From Bugula neritina (Eukaryota > Animalia > Bryozoa): 64,000 nt of DNA. The notes below the pieces were generated by a model. It had not been told where the DNA came from and made no database searches. It worked only from the letters and a program-made list of their open reading frames with translations. A program made the position numbers and the translations under genes. Below, piece by piece: positions 21,843 through 55,100 of this stretch. Each line of letters starts with the position of its first letter. Position 1 is the stretch's first letter. The stretch covers positions 9,704,741 to 9,768,740 of the forward strand of contig OZ037768.1 in NCBI GenBank assembly GCA_964035545.1, written 5' to 3'.

Positions 21843-24800
21843 TCAGCTTAGTTCAAACCCAGCGCCAGATTCAATGGCATATAGAAGCTTTGATCTCATT
21901 ATTTCTATATCAGAATATTCCGGTAGCTTTAAAAAGTTCATACAAGTGCTTGCAGTAGGCAGTCTATCCTCTTCACCTCCATGATGCACACAAAATGCAG
22001 GATATAAGTTCTAAAATAAAATATCTCATATGAGGGCAAAGCAATACACATATAACTCATTGCAAAGCTAACAATGCCAGCATAAAATCAAACTGTCAAA
22101 CACAATAATTAACATCATAGCTTCATAAACATGACCTAGTGATATGCGATAAAAGACACAATATAATATGTCAATCAAGCACTAACAGATTTCATAACAA
22201 AAGTTTTTACAATGTAGAGGAAAAAGAGTTTAACCTTAAAACCAAGAAGGGGAGGTCTGGAGCAGCTGGTCACAAACTTGAGCAAAGAGCTTCTCTGGGC
22301 TGGAGTGAACTTATTTACTACCTCCCAAAACAGAAGAATAGTCGGGTGGTCAGATGAATATGAACCTATAACAAGACATAGTAGTACAAGCAATGAAAAA
22401 TGCTGTCTAATTGATTTAGTGTAGTTAGAGTTAGCAAACCATTTTTTGATCCTTTGTTCTAATTGATAGAACTGACAGAATATTATTATTCATAGAGAAT
22501 TAAACTGCAGCACTGTACCATTAAGAAAACATATAAACATTGGGACAAAACATAAAATGGATGAATAAAATATCGAACTCATACAATATTTACAAGCATA
22601 AAATACCACACAATATTTGAAAACTGTGTTAAACATGTCAACCTCATAAAAATGGTGGAAGATATAACGCATATAGGCCATAAGTGTGTGTCACACCCGG
22701 AACTCCCAAACTCTGCCGTATACTCACCAGAATACTGAGTGTGAACTCTGAGGTCATTGACATCTATGGGTGACGTGGCACCTGATATCACTACATTCAG
22801 TTCATGTTGATTGAACATTCTCAGCCACTCCAGTTTGATGACATCTTCCAGACCTTGCGTGAAGGCCTGACATTGCGGGCGAATCTGACAAAATATTACA
22901 CCACCATATATAGAGAAGAGAGCCTATAGTTTGCTATATATACATTTCGTGTGTGTGCGTGTGTGCTGATGCGTGCGTGTGTGTGCATATGCGTGTGTGT
23001 GTGTGTGTGCATGTGCGTGGGATAAACTATTATAATAGTCACAGCACCATATAATAAATACAGTGTAATTATAAACATTATGAAACTTAAAATAAAAGTT
23101 ATTTCTAAAAGATACAACTTTTATGTGATTGTGTAGAATTATCTTCTACTTCAATATGAAGAGCATAAGGTTGTAGAAAATCCTTGATTTTCTAATGTTA
23201 TATATCAAACACTACATAGCAGAAGATCTTCAACAGTTATTTTACTTTTTAAATTAACTTCATATGTATATCATACAATGTAACAATTTTTATTTCTACT
23301 TTTACCTTTCACTCAATTATAAGTGGGCATAAAAAACAACACTAATTTTTAAATTATATGCAGAAAGACAACATAATACAATGTGGGATTATTACCTGCT
23401 TGTTCAGTTTATAGTCAGCCATTAGATGTACATATTCTATGCAGTTGTTTTTATTTACACTAATCTGCTTGCCGTTTGGCTTTAGTTCAACATGAGATGT
23501 GGTTCCCAGCACTTCGTTAACGACACTAAAGTCAAGTCCTAGCTCATTGACATCCCCAGTGTAGTTCTTGACAAACAGTAGACTCCTGAAACCAGTTGCC
23601 CATAAACATTTGAATATTTTCCAAGAAGAGTTTGTAGTGATTTCCACATTACAAAATAATGTAATATTATAGTTACAACCTTACCTATATAGTGTAGGAT
23701 CAAGAGAAGACAACTGATGAAAGTCACTATCCAGTTTACCAAGAATCTTGGTTAAAAAAAATCCAGCAAATGGAAGTTCGATCAGCATGTTTTCAAATAG
23801 AGCCTAAAAGATCAATCATATGCAAACATACATTATACAAAAGGAGCAAGTGATAAAACAAATATAAAGCTTACATTCATATTACACATCTATAACACTA
23901 AAAATCAAAATTATTGTAGAGCAAAGGCATTTAAACAGAATAGTTTGCATCTATAATTTAGAAACTAATATGAAGTGGGCATTGATCAAAATTAAATTCA
24001 TATTCATTGTCAATCTCATATTAGTCACTGGACGAATTTGCTACATGTGAATTGCACAAAATTTTATAATTTTTCTAAACTTGAAAAACCATACCCGGAC
24101 AGGTAGTCATGCATTGCAGAAGAGTAAAAATTAAAATTGCTACTTGATGTCATCTTGAATATTTACTGTCATAAATTTTGCTACTGACAATAATGTATAA
24201 TAGAACTTCAACGTCACCTTTCCCAGCATTCTACCCAGGAAAAAGAAATGTTTCTCAGAACCCTCGATAACAGCTGGAGCCTCAGGGTTAGGATAAAGTA
24301 GCTTGTCATTAGATGAGGTCAGCTTGAAGAACCCTCTGTTCGGGTCAAACCCTGTCTTTAAAAGCTCAGAGAGAAATTCTCTAAAAATTCCACCTCCATC
24401 AATGCCAGCTTCTTCTAGGCCAGCATTGTTCCTCATATTCACTCTGATTTTTGGCTTCACAGTAGACTCTACAGAAATTTGCTATTTTTAATGAACTAAT
24501 AACATATATGACAGGCTGAGGGTACTGCAAAGTTAAAGAATATTGCCAAATGAGACTGCTCCATCATGTAAAAAGATAAACAACTACTGTCCTATTACAT
24601 TAGTCTTGCTGTTGAGCTGGTAAATAAAGACAGAATACAACATCCAATTAACTTCTCAAATGAGTGTAACCTGTTAAGACTAAACAACCTAAGCATACCG
24701 TTGTCAGTGGATAACTTCTCAAAAGCATCCTCGTAGATATAATCTCTACGGATGTTAATGTCAATTGTCGCTTGGCTCATTTGCCCGAACCCATCAAAAC

Positions 24801-43164: not shown

Positions 43165-46100
43165 TTATGTATCACCAGCTCCACCCACATCAGAACCAGA
43201 CTGAACGAATTTTATACCAGGAACACCGCTTGGCGCATCTTCAGGGACCTTCCAGTTTAGTTCCCGGCCTGCAATAAAAATTCCAATTCATTTCCGTCAT
43301 AAAATTATATTCGTTAACCGAAAAAATGTTGTATACTACACAACAAGTTTCAAATTTTGGGAGAAATAAAATTAGCACTTTAGGTAAAGGGAACTTTCAA
43401 ACCAACACTGCTTCTCTAGCTACATTTTAATATTATGCTTTATTGCCATTCATCTTGTAGAACTGCCTTTCTTGTGCATAATTAACTAAAATAATTTGTA
43501 GACACAATACAATGGGAACATTATATTACAAACTATATTGTAAAGTTTAGCAAAATATTTGAACATAAATGTCAACAAAAATAAAATAAATATTTACAAG
43601 GTGTGTCTTGTAAATTGTGTGCTGGGGTAAAAACTATGGAAATAATTAGTTGCGTATAACCTTTTAAAAAATATAGATACTGCAGATATGTAGCATGTAA
43701 TCTCCACTGATTTCTATACAATAACATTACTAAGAAAAATAGAATGCTGCTTCTCCTTTTATTGCTAACTTATTCCTCATTAAATTTATTGCTGTATGTA
43801 TGGTTTGTCAAACCCACAGTTACCTGATTTTAAGTATCAACCTCGAAAAATGTTTTTTAAATTTCCTATAGACTGCCCTGCTATTGCACGGCTAACTAAT
43901 AGCTGGTAAGTTCTCTCAACTATTTATATATATTCTTGTCCCCAGGCACCACTATTATTCACCATCAGTATGAACAATTGGACATTTTAAAAATAATATC
44001 ACTAGCATTGAGTTATATAATAATATTATTAAAAGCTGTTGAATAAAAGAAAAAGAAAATTTGTGCACATTTCAAATATTGTTACATGTTGCAACTCAAA
44101 CAATCGGGTTTTCAAAGAAATGAAATAAAATAAAGTTAGATGACATGCCGCCAATACAACATTTACCTTTCTCATACAGATCAATAACTTCAATCTTGGC
44201 TTTCTTATCTACATTGAGTTCTTTGTACTTGAAGTAAAGCTTGAGAGCTGCTTGAGCATCTTCAGTAGAATCATGAGTGTCGGATTGGATAGTCTCACCT
44301 AACAGATACACAATCAACTAATGTGTTATGTAAATATCAAGATTACAGATCTGCCCAAGTGTGCTACTTCCCTAATGCAAGAAAGTTATTTCGTCTTCTA
44401 GATTACTTAGATTATATGTGAAAAGACAGTAGTTCAAACATAAAAATGGCCATTATCAATCTACTTGGAAAATTAAATTTCAGGAAATAAAATTTACAAA
44501 CCTAGGAAGTACCAAGCAAGAAACTTCAACGATATCCTTCTTTGGCGTTGGAGGTAAAATAGCTCTGCAGTATCACAAACTTGCTTTGGTGGAATCTGAA
44601 AATATAAAATAGCTCAATAAATAAACATGCTATGATCAAACAGCCTTCAATCAATATCTAATACTTATGGGAGCTGCTTGCTATCTATTACTTACCACAA
44701 TGTTGATAACTCGGAAATCTTTCTTCAAACCATGTCCAACAAAGATGACACCTTTATCCACCATATACCGCAGTCGTATGTACATAGATTTGAGGGTGGT
44801 TAAATGCTTTGATGAAAGAGCAACATCGAGATCGCCAGGCTTGATTCCAGAAAACTAGAATATATACAGTAAAGTAAATAAAATGAAACAAATAGACCAT
44901 CAGTGGGCAAATGCATGCAATATCAGGTAGAGCAACAAGTTTGTTGATGTTTTAAATACTCTATATAAGCATTTGAAAGGAGCATCGATAATACGCAAAG
45001 AGTGAAAATTTTGTTGCGATGATTTATATACTATGCAATATTATATTATACAGCCGTTTTATTTAAATATAACGTAACAGAATGAGTGCCATCAGTGATT
45101 ATTACAATATAGAAAATTAAATTATATTCATTGGTTGAAACTTTTACTGCAAGCGAGATTACTAGAAGCATAGTGAAATGTTGAGCATATCAAATACTAA
45201 AAATGAGTCAACTTTAAAGTAGAACATATCAGTAACTATGTCAATGGTGCAAATAGCATGAAAACTTGAATTGAAACATCATGAGTACAAATTAAATACT
45301 TGCATCACACATTTTATTATGCTCCGAGGGGGGAATTGATTTGTAACAAAAAATTACTTGGAAGTGTTAATAATGCACAGCTATGAAGTTTCCACAAAAC
45401 ATGAGAAACCTGCACATTAAATTGACTGAACAAACAAGACTGTTTGGGAATGTCGATTAAGCTCATGTAACACAACAGTATCAAGTGAAATCTGCTAATA
45501 AAATATACAGTCAAAGTTTTGATGAACAAATAAGGATCAAACATTCCTATGTTTTCTTCAAGTTAAGATAATATTGACTTACTTCTGGTGTTAACAACAG
45601 CCCATTAGAAACAATTAAAAGCCACATTTAACAGAACTAGGTGTATAATAAATATAATTACTTGATAAGTGAGAGTATATATATTTACCCGATAGTATAT
45701 AATATAATTACCTGAGAGTATATAATATAATTCCTATGTTTTCTTCAAGTTAAGATAATATTGACTTACTTCTGGTGTTAACAACAGCCCATTAGAAACA
45801 ATTGAAAGCCTTCCGATTCATAAAGGCTGCCACAATTAACAGAACTAGGTGTATAATAAATATAATTACCTGAGTATATAATATATTTACCTGAGAGTAT
45901 ATAATATATTTACCTGAGAGTACATAATATATTTACCTGAGAGTATATAATATAATTACCTGAGAGTATAGAATATAATTACCTGAGAGTATAGAATATA
46001 TTTACCTGAGAGTATATAATATAATTACCTGAGAGTATAGAATATAATTACCTGAGAGTATATAATACAATTACTTGAGAGTATATAATATAATTACCTG

Positions 46101-49100
46101 AGAGTATAGAATATAATTACCTGAGAGTATATATAATTACCTGAGAGTATAGAATATATTTACCTGAGAGTATATAATATAATTACCTGAGAGTATATAA
46201 TATAATTACCTGAGAGTATATAACAGAATTACCTGAGAGTATATAATATAATTACCTGAGAGTATAGAATATATTTACCTGAGAGTATATAATATATTTA
46301 CCTGAGAGTATATAATATAATTACCTGAGAGTATATAATATAATTACCTGGGTGAGATAATCTACCACTTCCTCCTGAGTGCTGATATAGTCATCCATGA
46401 AAGGTTTAAATAGTAGATCAGTATCTAGCTTTTCACCTTTCCTAAAAAGGCACAAAGAGATGTGTTGTGTGTTGTGTGATGGGCGGTGTGTGGTGTGACA
46501 TGTGTAAGAACAATAGTTTGACTTCATAATGAATATAATATATACAGCATAAGTAGAAATAAAGAGCATGTAGTTTCATCCTTCCTATTAAAATCACACC
46601 AGTCCTAAATGCATACCCTCTGATACAAGTGACTCTAGCGACAGACATCTGCGGTGGTTTAATAGTGGATCTGGTGCCATCACTTCTCAGCTCTGACTCC
46701 TCCTACAAGCCAGACAGGATTACATGAACAGGTGCTCAGTTGACACTTAATCTCTGCTATACTGGTTCAGTAGTTCAATCAACAGTCTGTGATTATTGTC
46801 TTTTAGATAAAAAAGATAGGACGTTCAACTTTTTGCAACACCTTGTTTATTCTATTATGTATTGTCTGGCTTCAGGGAAGTTCTAAATTGACTCACTCAA
46901 CTAATATATGAGAAACTTTTAATATTTCACATGAAGTTATCTGGGTTTGGTGATATACTACAAAGCTTGATCAGTTGCAGCCTAATGTTTATTTATATTA
47001 GCTTTAAGCCAATGATAATGCATATTTGCATTCCCAGTTGGCCAATGAAATAGAAGTGGTCAAAACAACCTATATAAAACACACTTCGATTGAGGCCAAG
47101 CTATCGAGGTATTCAATGCAGATCACAAAGTTATGCTAATAATCAATACTATGTCGATATCACATCACTAGCAACTACTACAATGGGATATAAGAACCAA
47201 CTAAGCAGACAGACAGATGGATACGATGTACTGGGAATACTCCATAACAACTGTGAAGTTGAAATTCCTTCCATAGAGCTGAATACAAGGAGATTCTCTG
47301 TACCGGCAAATGATGAGGGTAAGATGCTTCAGGTTGAAGTTGAAGAATGTTTTACAGATGACTTTAGACCCAGAGCCTACAGTCTACCAGCAAAACTAAA
47401 GAGAGAAGACAAACCCTGTGCACCAGATGACCAATATTTTATGAGTGACAGGAAACTATTTGCCATTCTGACAAACGTAGTTCACATTATTATTGGCATA
47501 GCCATGATTCAGCTAGGAATTGTGGGAACGTGGTACCAGAGATACATGAACTTTGAGAGAGACCAGCTACGCCATGTATTGTACATGTGCATAATGTTCA
47601 TCGTACTCGGTGTGTATGGACTATGTGTGGTAACAAAGAACCTAGGCAAGAACAGGTCTCACCAACTTTTATATTTATCTATATCTCTGTTAAGTATTGT
47701 AGCTAGTAGTTTTATCATGACCAATGGTGCTCTTGTAGTTATATCAGACACTTACAGAACAAACCAGAGGGTTATCGTGATGTTTGACTTACTAATAATA
47801 ATTTTATCTGGACTAGAAATTCCAGTTGCTATTGTGGGACTTTGCACTATAGTAAAACCAGCAGACCTAAACTCAACAATTCCACGGAAAGAGAACACAG
47901 AGAACAAGAACATTTCCTCTACTTCCTGGAATCCTATATTCAACTTGATACTCAACATTTCGCACATTGTGCTGGGATTGTGTATAGCCGAGCTGTCGGT
48001 CGTTGGCCTTCTGTATAGAAGGTTCATGAACATTGACCATAATAACCTGTTGGCCATAATTATTATTAGTTTTAGTTTCATTTCTATTGGAGCAACAGGC
48101 ATATACAACTACGCCTCAGGAAAAAAGAACAAGCTGCAAAAGCAGTCCACTTATACTTGTGGCCCTATACTAGCAGTAGGCAGTGCTGCCTCTATTATGA
48201 TAGTCATATCCATAGCCATGACAAACAAACAATATTACGTGGAAGTTGAAGCTATAAAAGCCTTTGATACTTTGATACTGAGCATCAGTGGGATGGAGCT
48301 GGTGGTGGGGACATTAGCTACAATCCTGTGTTTTATTCCTTGTCTTTTAACCAAGCTAGAGATGAACCAGAAAGCCCGAAAATGGAGAATAAAATTAATG
48401 AAACTACCGTAGAAATAAAGGTGACGCATATTTTTATATTTTAATGTCCAAACACAATATTAGTAAAAATATAACAACATTGTAATATCTTCAATTGGGT
48501 GTGTGTTGTTTTGCTGTATACACAGTCAAGAGACATTTTGTATAAACATGTTTATTAGCTGATGACAATGCTTGGTGTTGATGATGAGCAGTGTTTATGT
48601 ACCCTGTACAAACAAACAATCATGTAACTTGACCCTGTAGTAAAACTTGCATTATCTGGTCCACTGAAATTGGAACAGAGCTAAGAGTAGGGCCACATGG
48701 AAGGGGTATCACTACAGTGAGCTTCAGTGGCTAATCTGATTGTTTTAATTCTAATTACTTTTCATTATTGCAAATATGAAGCAAGATTTCAGAATGAAAT
48801 AGTTTATGAGAGGGGAGTTAAACCATCAGCAAATTATACAAATGGCCGCTGTACTGTGAGAAGTAGTCTGCTCAATGTGGCCCTAGCCTAACTGAGTAAA
48901 TGAATTGCCTTTCAAATAATTGCATTCGGTATTTAATAAATTTTATCAGTGAGGATGAAAATAAATTGACCCATCAACTCTACCTAATAAGTAAAAACCA
49001 ACAGAAGACTTCTTAAAAAGAAACTCAGCACCACTTTATGCAGTAGAGCCTCACGAAGTGAACCAGGGGCTTTATTATGGCTCGGGTTAGCATATGTAGC

Positions 49101-52100
49101 ATCACTTGATATCATATATCTTAGCAATGTTGATTTAGTGTTTTATTCTATTAACATAATAGTAGGAATTTGTCTATCACATTTCACCTACAGTCATCCG
49201 TGAAAGTTTTGACACCCCATTATAGTTTTTGAAGCTTCATGGCTGACCGAGCTTGCTAAACTCATACTATATGTATCTCATCTAAATTAATTAAGGACTA
49301 TATTGTTGCAAACGGTTTGTAACTCTTCTCATAGTTTAACTGTATCTCACTGAAATAATGGGTAAGCTATATTTGCTCTAGTAATTCCTATGCCAAGGCA
49401 AAGTTTAGAGTGTTGTGCAGTTTCATACTCTATCATTCTAACACTATAATCTATTTAGAATGCATGACTTAGGACTTTACAACTTCAAAACCCACTGGAC
49501 CTATTATATTGAGCAGTTTATTGTTGGACAACCACTGAATAGAAAACAAACTATGCGCTTTTTTATCACATTTAACCAACACTTAACAAACTGAAACCTT
49601 ATTAAAAACCCATGTATACCCATAACCATGATTACAATGCAAGACTCCAACTTTTGAGTGAGCAACACTGACCGGTAACAATACACCAGGCATTGAGACT
49701 CTTGTCTACTAGCATAATACAAGTTGAGGTGTGAAGCCAGGTAAGATTGTTGACAAGAGAGATTAATAACTTACTTGGAGCTGATGATCTAAATTGGGCC
49801 ACGTAAGAAACATGCTAAATTGAAAAACTAAGCTAAACCTTACATTATTCTTAGCCTATCATAACTATGGTCACATGGTTGGAGAGGCAGAAAATTTGAG
49901 GAATTACCAGAATTTAATTTTTTAATAATGAGAGACATATGATTATTAATGGTACTGTCAAACTGGTGAAACCCACCATTCGCTTTCTGTGATTAAAGTC
50001 AGCGAGAGTTGAGTTGTTAACCGTAAGTCTTAAGAAGTGCAAAGCAACCAGAAACCCCAAATACTTTTTAGATGACCAAGCTGGTATAACAGTATCTTTC
50101 ATCAGTTTATCACAGACTGTGCATAGATGAATAATAAACTCATTTGGCCAAACCAAAATACACTAACAGAAATATCTGTTGTCAAATAGTAACAAAAACT
50201 TTGAGAGACTAAAAACTAGATCAACAGTTAACTGAGGTTTCAGCACAGTCTTCATGGAGCTTATTAAAGAAAACAGGTGATCAATATGAGTCACCGAGGA
50301 ACACTGAGATATATGGTGTACCTGGTTGAGGGAGACAAACTCAGCATCAATGCCAATGACATCTCCGGCTTCAAGCTTTTCATCACCACTGAGAGGGATG
50401 TTAGTGAAGGAGCGGACTCTATCACTGGCCAGCACAGCTTCAGAGAAGAGTGACTCATAGTTCTCAAACGGACTCTTCACTAAACAAACAGAAGATCGCA
50501 TCAGTATGCAATGATATAAGTGTTATGAGTTAAGTAGATATCTCATATTTGCAGCCCTTTCATGCCACGTCTTATGCATTACAGACTTTCGGCTGTCGAA
50601 AACACTCTTTAAGCTGGCATCTACAGTATAATATATATTTGACTGCAGTGCGTTTGCAAGCATTATTAAGCATTACTATAGTTGCATCATTAAACTCTAC
50701 CCCTACCATTTAATAAAAATAATGACAACTAAAAACATTTCCTGTAGTATTAAATTACTTATTTTGCAATATCACTAGCACTACTTAAATTGTAAAAAAC
50801 AATAGAGCAAGTGAAATGACTTGTTTATCATTGTAATGGTTGACCTACTCAGCAATACAATCTCTCCCACTTGACCTATTGAGGTTGCACTTGTCAATGC
50901 ATTATATTGTTATTTTCTTTTTATGCATGAACAGTGGAAAAACTAGTAGAGAAAACAAAGTATTTCACAATGTTATTATTGAGATTTGATCCCTTAAGTA
51001 TTAAGTAGCTTGTCCTAATACCACGAGAGTCTTAAACAAATTTATTAACTATCATGGGATTTATCGTGTGATAAGATAGGAACCAGATATAAAAGAAGTA
51101 ATGTAGTCATTAGACACAACTCTTATTTAGCAATTGAACCAGGAACTTCAAATACGATTTTATTTCAAATTTGTGTATTAATCAGCAATTTGATGGGAAT
51201 GGCAATTTGCATATCAATGTGAAAAAAGTTATCAATTATCAAAAAAGTCATCAATAATTGGAAAACTCAAAGTGGTTAGTGAATTTTAGTTGGTACATGC
51301 TCCTTGCAGTAGTCAAGGCCAAGAATGTAGAAGCAACAAGTAAAAATATTGATTACATCTTGTGAAATGCTTACCATCACAAAACCCATAGAGTCAAGGG
51401 TAAACTATGGCATAGATCTATATCTTTCAGAAAATAACTTGGCAAGACCTACTCTTGGTGGTTTAGAAAACCCTATTTATGTGTCAATAAATATGTTTTG
51501 AATGAAATTTTCAAACTAAATAACGCTTGAAACATAGCCTAGCTTTCGTTTTGCATGAGTCTATTGATTATGAAAACTGTGAATGCAATATTTCAATCAA
51601 ATGCTTTAAGACCTTAGCTGAACAAAAAATTCAAAATCAACTAGGGTTTTTAGCATGTGATATATCTCTCAAGAGATATACCATCAGACTGTTCCTATTT
51701 GTTTGATTGGGACATGTATGGAAAGCTGGACATATTTTGTGATCACTTTATAGAAAATGCAATATTTACTGAGACAATTAAATTGATGATTTTTCAAGAC
51801 TTATAAAGAATTTCAACTCTCCACCACACTAATTGCACTTTATTTCCTTTATATTTTTGTTTGAATAACTTGGAAGATATGATAGTGATAATCACTTGCG
51901 GAATGACTTTAGATAAGCTACCTTCTATTTTATACGCATCATTGTAATTCTTTCTGATGTAGAACAGAGCACAAGGCCATTTCCAATCCATGTTAAACTT
52001 CACTGCATCTTCCTGCAATATTATACTAAGTGAGACAATTTGTAAACAATTGTATCGTATTTTCAACCCTATCATTACTTAAAAGAGTTACTGCATATAC

Positions 52101-55100
52101 TAAAAAAGTGCAAAATACAGTATATACCTTCTTGAAACTTTCTAAAACAATCTGACAAATGAAATTACTAATTTTAGCTCAAAATACAGCAGCAAATGCA
52201 AATTGTTATTAAAACAGAGACAAGTGGCTGTTTGCTTGTTATGGCACATGGTCAGATGTTATTCCAAAGCAACTTGAATAGTAATGACTGTTGGTTGTCC
52301 AGTCGATGGGGGACACAAAATCTATCATTATTATTCCTTTAATTTTTGGCCATTCTTGATAGAGACATGTGCTAATGAATAATACTTTATATTCATCTGA
52401 AAATACTTAAACTCTCCTTCCCTGTTAGAGCCCTGATGGTGAAGTGTTGTTATGTGGCCCAATTACCCCGGTACCTTACCCGTGGCCCTGCTGGGGTTTG
52501 ACCCCACGCCCCGGGGTCTAGTACACACTAGGCCAGTGTTCCAACCACTAGACCACCACTGCTCCCTAGCACAATGATCTCCAACCATACTTCAGGACAG
52601 ATTAGACAACTCTGTATTGAATTAATCTCTTCCACAAAATATTACACATATTACGTATTAGTAACTATTACTTGTAGTAAGTTTCAATGGTTATCATAAA
52701 TTGAGCAAGATAGTTCAAATGAAACTCATGTATATTCAATGCACTCCAGAAAAATGACTATGAATAGGATGCAAGCTAATTGGCAGCCTGCACATAATAT
52801 GTAACAGATATGCCTTTATTATTAGACTATGCGTAATATAATAACTTATTATTTCATAATTCAATTTATAGCATGAATCAGGCGTAATAATGCTAATTTA
52901 TATTGAATTAGTTGTTATGTTGACCATGTTTTGAGGTGAATGACTGCAGCTGCTACATTATTTATCATGACATCAAATGTGTTCTGTATACGTGCATTAT
53001 GTATTACAGCTAGCTACCAGCACATCAAGTTATTAACTATACTTACTTTTTCAATATCTACTATAGAAAAATCATTGAATAGATAGAACTGTGTGGTTGT
53101 AACGCCTTCTTTTCTCTGATGATATGTTTCCCCGACATGTATGTGCGACACCAAGTTGTTTCCTAACTTATTGTCTCTTATATGAGCAACGCTGGCCATT
53201 AGCTCATAGGTGACGGCACCATCTTCACTGCCAGAAGACTTCGGCTGCAAAAAGATTACACCTCGTTTCATTTATCCAGACATAATAATTTCTAGACAAA
53301 AATCGGCATATTTGTTACTATTTTAATTATAAGCATAGAAACAGCATGAACGATTTTAAAAAACGAACAGGTATGGATTAGAAAGGCCTGAAATAAATTA
53401 GGTTTACTTACACCATATGGGTCACCTATGTTGCTAACGGACACGTGGCCATTGTCTAGCAGCTTCACTGAAAGTCCGAGTGGAACCCAAGCTGGTGGAT
53501 CCCCTTTAGACGCATGTCCTCCCAAGGCGCCAACTTCACTGTTCACACAATATAACTGGCATAAGTAAACCTGATATCTATGTCAAGGCAAGGATAAACA
53601 AGGACAATTGTCTACTGCCAACATAAAACCAGGGGCTTGGAAGCATACGTTGATGTTTCAACTTTTTTGTGTAAATATTGATATCAAACAAAACAGGAGT
53701 ATTTTATGTTGTGTTGAAATATTGTTCTTTTATTGGAACAGCTAGCAAAACCTAAAATAAGCCACTCCTCTAACATGATTAATGAGAAAAATTTTGCATT
53801 CTGCTCAGAATTATATTCAACAGCAACACTCACTCTCTTCCTTCATGAAAGAAGTAACAGTCATTTCTAGTACATCCCGAGCCATAGCGACAAGCCTTTT
53901 TCGTTCTGCTAAAAAATTAAAAACACATTAATAAAATCATGTACTCTATTCTATATATAAGATGCTTAAATTTGAGACAACTGAATTTAATACATATAGT
54001 TGAGACATTTTAGCCTCAGCCTTACAGCAAATAATTTGAAAAAAGCTATTGAAATGTTATTTCTCTTATTGACACAAGGATTGTGACATGTTGCCCATTT
54101 TTTGAAAAATTTGGAGAAAAAATGGCATTTCCCTAAATAAGAAGCAAGAGTTTTGGTAGATCAAAATATTTTCATAGCACATGTGGCTATCAGTACACAA
54201 CAGTGTGCAACTCCTGATGAGAAGTCAACAGATTGTTCTGGTTTAATGCATCACTGCTAATTTATGACTGTATAGTCACACACAGAAACACACATTTGCT
54301 TTCAGATAGCGATTTTGCAATTTACAATGCTAAAATTCTTATACACACATCACCATCACCTACCTGTGGTCAACAGAACTTGCGTTACTGGTAGGTTTAC
54401 GCTCATGTTCTTCGGCCAATAGCTCAAGCTGTCTTTTCCAAAAATCAAGTGTCGTGTCATTATCTACTTGACAATTCAGTCCTATAACGTCAGGCACGTT
54501 CTTGAGTAAACGTTGCTGCGTCTAAAAGCAGTAGACATGGAATTTGAAAGAAATCTTTATAGTGCAAGTTTGCAACTATGATGAAGAAACATAGAAAATA
54601 GTATTTAGAGCTGGCTAATCTAATCTCACAACCCTCTACTATGATTTTTATTGAGTTTATAGAATATAAAATTCTAGCAGTTGTATATTGAGAGCCCTTA
54701 GACTCAGCTAGAAGTTATATATAGATGAGAGAAGTGTCTCACATGAAGCTGATAGCCATCACATTTCTGGCAGAAGGACTGCTGACTCTGAGCAGCATTC
54801 ATACTTCTTGCTATCACTTCTGAAAATGGTACTTTGGAGAAAGCAAAGTGGGGAACTAAAAGTATACAAAACTAATTACTTGAAAGCAGCAGAGTTCAAT
54901 GCAACACTGTCTACTATAAATTTACTCTCAGCTTATGCAAACTAATTAGTCAATAGAGTAGGAAATGGATGAACACACCATCTACTGGTGCTTCCGGATA
55001 GTCCATGTTGAACATGAAGGTCTCCGATTCACGGCTGGACAAGTGCCCACATTTACTGCAGGATAGGTTGGTAGCAGTTGACGTTCCGAAGAGTTTTTGT

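Follow-up and report, generated by a model that had tools for sequence, protein, structure and literature searches.

We identified a nested gene in a 64,000-nucleotide stretch of the genome of the bryozoan Bugula neritina (assembly GCA_964035545.1, contig OZ037768.1, positions 9,704,741 to 9,768,740 of the forward strand), referred to here as the window and numbered from its first letter. The gene is a single-exon open reading frame (ORF) that lies on the opposite strand to its host, the deadenylase gene PAN2, and encodes a protein of two homologous, tandem four-helix units that are remotely related to the CD20/MS4A/sarcospan superfamily. On the evidence set out below, we consider it likely that this is a functional, independently transcribed nested gene, encoding an eight-helix protein with both termini in the cytoplasm (N-in/C-in) and composed of two divergent CD20-like (MS4A/sarcospan superfamily) units. 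The initial annotation of this DNA had proposed a nested, antisense, MS4A-like gene under selection, and a candidate channel or receptor; the nested, antisense, selected gene for a tandem CD20-like tetraspan stands, whereas MS4A membership and the receptor idea were overstated. The gene and the adjoining parts of its host are:

47183..48412, + strand: single-exon coding sequence (CDS) of 409 codons plus TAG, product an eight-transmembrane (8-TM) protein (ORF list, sister-lineage protein, substitution rates, RNA contigs)
46702..50320, - strand: PAN2 host intron of 3,619 nucleotides (nt), which contains the nested gene (splice joints in four runs; homologous intron in other species)
50321..50481, - strand: PAN2 exon that directly precedes the host intron in the direction of PAN2 transcription (spliced contigs; conserved in L002-L004 and L029)
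46616..46701, - strand: PAN2 exon that directly follows the host intron in the direction of PAN2 transcription (spliced contigs)

The ORF runs from an ATG at 47183 to a TAG stop at 48410-48412 on the + strand of the window. There is no in-frame ATG upstream of 47183, and a 95%-identical protein of 409 amino acids (aa) from a sister lineage (P0001, from a public assembly) agrees with this start; a 440-aa version of the ORF was rejected, as it begins at TTG, which is not applicable to a eukaryote. The position, the 409 codons and the single-exon coding originally reported were confirmed by the ORF list and by the lack of joints in the RNA contigs described below. The host was recognized as PAN2 from Pfam matches on the minus strand, with UCH_1 exons at 53014-53271 (E 1.3e-12) and 54387-54521 and an RNase_T exon at 44687-44854; its exons were searched singly, by reference, and not as a joined, spliced PAN2 model. 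The host intron has GT..AG ends on the minus strand, and the joint 46701->50321 (CT..AC ends on the + strand), which spans the ORF, was found in runs X14, X11, X1 and X4, i.e., in four studies, including in a confirmed oligo-dT RNA library and in a 4,170-nt contig that resembles the PAN2 mRNA. This joint verifies that the whole gene is contained in one intron of an opposite-strand host and, with its own transcript, it is a nested antisense gene. The intron had been described as the largest in the PAN2 coding region, and it is the longest of the PAN2 introns mapped between ~43.2 and 57 kb, a range that takes in PAN2 downstream of its 5′ part. Two other parts of PAN2 were mapped in addition to these, a second intron of 175 nt at 46441-46615 (- strand) with splice joints in three runs, and a short exon at 53794-53916 (- strand) whose protein sequence is 55-79% identical in L002, L003 and Watersipora (L029), which indicates that it is a constitutive, conserved exon of PAN2 in this lineage.

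Our comparison with other genomes demonstrated that both the gene and its location are conserved. Single-ORF orthologues, with 39-49% identity over the TM core, are present in three further species (L002-L004, L026-L028, and Watersipora subatra OY755160.1, L029), and they occupy the homologous PAN2 intron, between exons that match 46616-46701 (93-97% protein identity in the three other species) and 50321-50481. For example, the W. subatra host is annotated by NCBI as a 1,234-aa product with PAN2_N, UCH, UCH_1 and RNase_T domains, and shows the same nested arrangement. Comparison of the CDS with that of the sister lineage (L001) identified 27 synonymous and 21 non-synonymous differences, i.e., a synonymous rate (dS) of 0.105 and a non-synonymous rate (dN) of 0.022. 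The resulting dN/dS of 0.21 (Fisher p 2.5e-7) is not near 1 and bears out the purifying selection suggested earlier from the sequence; identity to L001 is 96% in the CDS and 86-89% in the flanks. The gene is single-copy in its own 216-Mb genome, where a half-repeat profile matches only its two repeats, and no parent copy or paralogue was found there. The search for orthologues and paralogues proposed with the initial annotation therefore returned orthologues, no paralogue, and nesting in PAN2 that is conserved in four species. In each of the four genomic contexts the CDS is free of introns, and PAN2 is intron-rich; the initial annotation had proposed retroposition or insertion on the ground that all the neighbouring genes are rich in introns. 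Since no parent copy or paralogue is present, and since the arrangement is older than the split of the four species, retroposition is neither supported nor refuted. Outside PAN2, HECT-domain exons at 21846-22348 (- strand) are collinear with the start of L002, showing that synteny with this species reaches at least 25 kb past PAN2.

The wider family is small. An exhaustive phmmer search of 1.84 billion representatives identified 11 proteins at E <= 1e-3, two of them with names, and the one close member with a name comes from the bryozoan W. subatra, annotated as ‘uncharacterized protein’; a word-index profile search gave no further relatives. The family is known so far only from bryozoan-type genomes and associated metagenomes, and is apparently lineage-restricted. 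A distant branch (P0011-P0013) shows 27-29% identity in the alignment; a search of its short contigs for PAN2 exons found none, and this branch is not part of the evidence for nesting. Directly upstream of another distant member, P0017, is a 390-aa multi-TM ORF (L022:318-1490, + strand) with no Pfam match and marginal similarity to the family (E 0.18), which may be a further diverged tandem paralogue.

To survey transcription we used Logan contigs from four runs of four studies, placed on positions 45500-51400 of the window. These contigs, and the signals surrounding the ORF, define the following features:

47050..48458, + strand (inferred): short unspliced transcript of approximate extent, ~1.35-1.4 kb (RNA contigs)
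47009..47077, + strand: candidate own promoter, with CCAAT at 47009 and 47042, the octamer ATTTGCAT at 47024 and TATATAA at 47071 (sequence)
48414..48419, + strand: AATAAA polyadenylation signal, 2 nt past the stop (sequence; a contig of run X4 ends at 48458)

Unspliced contigs cover the ORF in X1 (47050-48388), X4 (47118-48458) and X14 (47190-47561 and 47822-48134), and a longer form in X11 spans 46730-48691. The ORF-covering contigs contain zero internal splice joints, and one of the runs is oligo-dT RNA. There was no contig coverage in any of the four runs at 48849-49439 of the same intron or in the next intron (50622-51400). This pattern of coverage fits neither contamination with genomic DNA nor an even signal from pre-mRNA, and is consistent with an independent transcript of ~1.35 kb. 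Taken with selection and conservation, this transcript bears out the proposal that the gene is real, with the strand of the RNA deduced from the signals around it. The RNA runs differ from the window by ~4.5% in the CDS, which indicates that they derive from the sister lineage. The promoter motifs are also present in the sister lineage and do not recur in the distant orthologues, so that the promoter assignment is tentative. Two short upstream ORFs, at 47116-47139 (7 codons) and 47133-47171 (12 codons), would belong to the leader of a transcript begun upstream of 47116; of the RNA contigs, one starts at 47050 and one at 47118.

Several further observations concern the host intron. The region 49445-50350 has coverage as well, from contigs of X11, X14 and X1, two of which reach ~30 nt into the PAN2 exon 50321-50481; this coverage may represent partial intron retention, an alternative 5′ extension of the PAN2 exon, or another small transcript. 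The sister-lineage contig L001 is collinear with the window as far as 49596, and its first 42 bases at the 5′ end are unmatched. We rejected a reading of these bases as a spliced leader or 5′ exon, as they are the terminal inverted repeat of an element resembling a miniature inverted-repeat transposable element (MITE), ~155 nt long, with terminal inverted repeats of ~50 nt and at least 12 copies in the genome (loci L015-L021, e.g., C1:16248422-16248467, C9:4136847-4136888 and C7:1221208-1221248). One such element is present in the sister lineage (L001:1-42) just upstream of window position 46730, ~28 nt from a PAN2 exon, and the window is without this insertion.

The protein consists of two homologous halves. 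The halves encoded by 47432-47911 and 47912-48409 share 26% identity (BLASTP E 2e-13) and align in register at an offset of 480 nt, without an internal indel and with gaps only at the extreme C-terminal end. Profiles of repeat 1 and repeat 2, built from 14 orthologues, match each other by hhalign at E 3.3e-19. The two modules described earlier, their offset, the lack of a net indel and the quoted motif pairs (HIIIG/HIVLG and others) are all found in the translation, and with eight helices and homologous halves the tandem 4-TM + 4-TM architecture is upheld. The two repeats are:

47438..47866, + strand: repeat 1, residues 86-228, TM1-TM4, a divergent CD20-like four-helix unit (alignment of the halves; model; PDB matches)
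47918..48358, + strand: repeat 2, residues 246-392, TM5-TM8, the more conserved copy (alignment of the halves; Atlas neighbours MS4A/CD20 and then MLC1, as a lead only)

The relationship of these repeats to CD20 was traced through a crinoid protein. The weakest of the phmmer matches is Anneissia japonica XP_033112411 (E 8e-4), which passes the Pfam CD20 model (PF04103, gathering cut-off 27.9 bits) with both of its halves (29.1 and 39.6 bits) and as a whole protein (52.7 bits). The bryozoan family profile aligns with this protein by hhalign at a probability of 95.7% (E 1e-8), with 214 collinear columns across both repeats, and with a profile of five crinoid paralogues at 94.8% (E 5e-8), compared with E 0.088 for reversed controls and 0.12 for column-shuffled controls, or worse. 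The alignment pairs the TM1 His-Ile-x-x-Gly...Leu-Gly, TM2 Gly-x-x-Gly and TM4 Asp...Glu positions. In addition, repeat 2 falls nearest in the Atlas to MS4A/CD20 clusters, followed by MLC1, at scores of 0.80-0.83, which are leads only as the threshold of the tool is 0.9. Other families fit less well: the best match to the tetraspanin model PF00335 has E 0.0096 and 16 bits, below its cut-off of 32.1, and the protein has no large Cys-containing second extracellular loop, so we do not class it as a tetraspanin; sub-threshold Pfam matches to YgaP-like_TM, Tetraspanin and DUF981 were dismissed as noise. A PDB sequence search with the protein returned nothing at E <= 10. The kinship to CD20/MS4A that is supported is therefore remote and at the level of the superfamily only, and the MS4A likeness originally proposed holds in this sense, through hhalign to PF04103-positive crinoid proteins and through structure, and not as membership of the Pfam CD20 family. 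It does not extend to the long second ectoloop, the multi-exon structure or the gene clustering. A study from 2010 concluded that invertebrates are without MS4A-type genes (PMC2826416). Our whole-genome scan with PF04103 found other loci in the B. neritina genome, with the nested gene not among the matches. These comprise several exons with similarity to the N-terminal portion of the model, the best at 27.3 bits, just under the cut-off (G000:C7:7364841-7367097, C7:8175747-8175956, C5:17105032-17134997 and C6:7765349-7765501), on contigs other than that of the nested gene, and they are ordinary multi-exon CD20/MS4A-like genes, in clusters.

Structural prediction points to the same superfamily. 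An AlphaFold model of repeat 1, built with 28 half-sequences, has four helices, a predicted local distance difference test (pLDDT) of 87.5 and a predicted template-modelling score (pTM) of 0.80, and its top three PDB chains by Foldseek are FcεRIβ (MS4A2), with probabilities of 0.99-1.0 and E ~0.1. Among 48,161 chains searched exhaustively with VIA-align, the highest scores were those of sarcospan (Z 16.2 and 15.4), MS4A2 (15.2 and 14.4) and two tetraspanins (14.4 and 13.7, a similarity limited to the helix bundle), with generic helix bundles at Z <= 13.6; CD20 scored Z 13.7 in a second-look alignment of the Foldseek matches, and its chains 11.6-11.9 in the exhaustive search. The sarcospan, MS4A2 and CD20 matches, which belong to one clan, cover 131-139 of 143 residues with top identities of 12-17%, the highest among the matches. 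The structural comparison suggested earlier thus returns sarcospan, MS4A2 and CD20 as the best matches to one repeat, by a modest margin. The full-length model was poor, with a pLDDT of 59, and Foldseek searches of the PDB and Atlas with it were set aside as uninformative.

Eight helices are predicted from the model and from hydropathy. The loops between TM2 and TM3 and between TM6 and TM7, the inter-repeat linker and the C-terminal tail are rich in Lys and Arg, which suggests that both termini are cytoplasmic. The four outward loops are predicted to be 3-8 residues long in both repeats. With ectoloops of no more than eight residues the protein would have no ligand-binding ectodomain of the kind found in MS4A chemoreceptors, which makes the chemosensor or receptor role raised in the initial annotation unlikely. 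Conserved polar residues are predicted to lie within the membrane helices in repeat 1 (N98, H101, Q110, D202 and E212) and in repeat 2 (N258, H261, E270, D362 and E372). In each repeat the first helix carries the Asn, the His and the Gln or Glu, and the fourth helix the Asp and the last Glu. The 85-residue N-terminal tail is variable save for one conserved motif:

47366..47389, + strand: conserved N-terminal motif R-x-R-x-x-S-x-P, residues 62-69 (Ser67), candidate kinase/14-3-3 site (alignment)

Ser67 is invariant in an alignment of 8 sequences, and 11 of 15 family members carry the whole motif. It matches the basophilic-kinase and 14-3-3 mode-1 consensus, which makes it a candidate site of phosphorylation.

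These features allow a mechanism to be proposed. The two tandem four-helix units would correspond to the usual dimer of CD20-type proteins, joined covalently in one chain; such a covalent pseudo-dimer, as already suggested for this gene, is reasonable but not new, as the concept is in the literature with tandem MS4A proteins and MLC1 as precedents, and the packing of the repeats in this way is a prediction. The short outward loops and buried polar residues suggest a role within the bilayer, as an ion-conducting or channel-regulating scaffold, and not as a ligand receptor. The protein might then act in the plane of the membrane as a small ion pathway or a channel-associated scaffold, with the cytoplasmic RxRxxSxP site as a probable control point by phosphorylation. 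A bolder proposal, which we treat as a long shot, is that this bryozoan-restricted, single-chain equivalent of the CD20 dimer forms or gates a proton or divalent-cation pathway through its buried His, Asp and Glu residues, and that ~100 million years of antisense residence in the PAN2 intron would be due to regulation coupled with that of the host deadenylase gene, and not to chance.

A number of results weigh against our preferred reading, and part of them favour an explanation in which the CD20-like resemblance is convergent, i.e., an unrelated, lineage-specific four-helix family that shares packing and small-residue motifs with CD20. PF04103 was not matched by the whole protein or by either half at E <= 10, the HMMER comparison called for by the initial annotation, nor, at E <= 1, by a single one of the 15 family members, and a half-repeat profile searched against PDB sequences gave nothing at E <= 10; this lack of a sequence match in Pfam and the PDB speaks for convergence. 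An hhalign comparison with the CD20-like first exons of the same genome (P 0.0033) was discarded, with a reversed control at 0.0045. High scores against many unrelated folds are a general feature of four-helix bundles, the margin of the structural matches over generic four-helix bundles, which commonly reach ~13-14, is ~1.5-2.6 Z, and TM segments are able to inflate profile scores. The full-length model, with its eight helices, has low confidence, so the packing of one repeat on the other stays a prediction; the complex prediction for repeat 1 with repeat 2 scored 0.08, below threshold, and speaks neither for nor against such packing. The channel or regulator function is an argument from analogy and residue pattern, and the contigs give no RNA strand, the + strand having been assigned from the ORF, its conservation, the TATA motif and the AATAAA. 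We nevertheless regard convergence as improbable: the collinear hhalign match is 6-7 orders of magnitude better than its reversed and shuffled controls, it aligns the His/Gly/Leu-Gly positions of TM1, the Gly-x-x-Gly of TM2 and the Asp...Glu of TM4, and the top structural matches are specifically from the CD20 clan, with the highest identities.

The protein might instead be the bryozoan counterpart of vertebrate MLC1 and likewise modulate volume-regulated ion fluxes. MLC1 has the same 8-TM, 4+4 plan and a similar length (377 aa; PMC4381631, PMC9144339), and the closest named Atlas neighbours include MLC1 clusters (0.80-0.85), one of which also has a CD20 annotation, but these scores are leads below the threshold of the tool. 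Neither of the two named phmmer matches is MLC1, and a search from the crinoid bridge protein returned crinoid paralogues only, with no MLC1. Moreover, the match between the two bryozoan repeats (E 3e-19) is far stronger than that of either one with a crinoid CD20 domain, which suggests a lineage-specific duplication and not an ancient, shared 4+4 ancestor; we hold a counterpart of MLC1 to be unlikely. A very different explanation, that the ORF is non-functional (a chance intronic ORF, a decaying retrocopy or a transposon ORF), could draw on its intronless structure, its location in an intron and the MITE inserted just upstream in the sister lineage. It conflicts with the low dN/dS, the intact orthologues in the same intron of four species at 39-49% identity, the gene's own transcription unit and its single copy in the genome. 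No transposase-like or other family was matched in Pfam. The selection and synteny results effectively refute this explanation, which we consider to have next to no chance of being correct. The reading of a functional nested gene for a tandem, divergent CD20-like protein fits these results best.

Tandem CD20-like proteins are present in other lineages, and comparison with these shows what sets the bryozoan family apart. The crinoid double-CD20 proteins (A. japonica XP_033112411 and its paralogues, and Antedon mediterranea) also have two tandem four-helix units per chain, align collinearly with the bryozoan family over TM1-TM6 and have the TM1 His, the Gly motifs and the TM4 Asp...Glu in common with it. 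In contrast to the bryozoan family, however, both of their halves pass PF04103, their second ectoloops are long and rich in Cys, and their C-terminal tail is long, repetitive and rich in Gln, Pro and Met. The crinoid CD20 domains resemble each other at E 4e-13 and cross-lineage pairs match at only 8e-5 to 5e-3. This much greater similarity within each lineage implies that the tandem architecture probably arose separately in bryozoans and crinoids, and the crinoid duplication appears to be independent of the bryozoan one. Crinoids carry a small family of such proteins (P0015 and P0021-P0024), all annotated as uncharacterized. Tandem ‘long MS4A’ proteins are also present in chicken, opossum and platypus, and were read by Zuccolo et al. 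2010 as hard-wired dimers (PMC2826416). These vertebrate proteins are likewise covalent fusions of two MS4A-type units, but they are recent fusions of recognizable paralogues, multi-exon and located in MS4A clusters, whereas the bryozoan family is unseen by PF04103, single-copy, intronless and old.

Single-unit relatives offer a second comparison. CD20 (MS4A1), FcεRIβ (MS4A2) and sarcospan, to which a single repeat shows its closest structural similarity, have the same predicted N-in/C-in topology; unlike the bryozoan protein, with which they have no sequence-level match, they contain one 4-TM unit and form non-covalent oligomers, and CD20 has a large second ectoloop that bears its epitopes. 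The likeness to MLC1 lies in the 8-TM, 4+4 plan, the short loops and the size, compared by description and by weak protein-language-model scores only. The human MLC1 gene is multi-exon. MLC1 (modulator of volume-regulated anion channel (VRAC) current 1) is an astrocyte membrane protein of 377 aa with eight TMs, a 4+4 repeat, short loops and a cytoplasmic N-terminus (PMC9144339, PMC4381631), and is described as a partner of GlialCAM (PMC9144339). Reviews describe it in human, mouse and zebrafish only, and its appearance has been tied to animals that develop myelin (PMC4381631).

These findings do not overturn current understanding, and their value lies mainly in annotation and in the comparative handle that they provide. 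The CD20/MS4A/sarcospan superfamily gains a branch that is unrecognized by Pfam (0 of 15 members matched). The retention of this gene in one PAN2 intron in four species, at 39-49% protein identity, provides a clean case of long-lived gene nesting. For the family itself, the bryozoan protein presents, naturally in one chain and with minimal loops, a fold whose role in transport or as a scaffold is debated (CD20, MS4As, TMEM176 and MLC1), and in this compact form it would lend itself to structural and electrophysiological studies.

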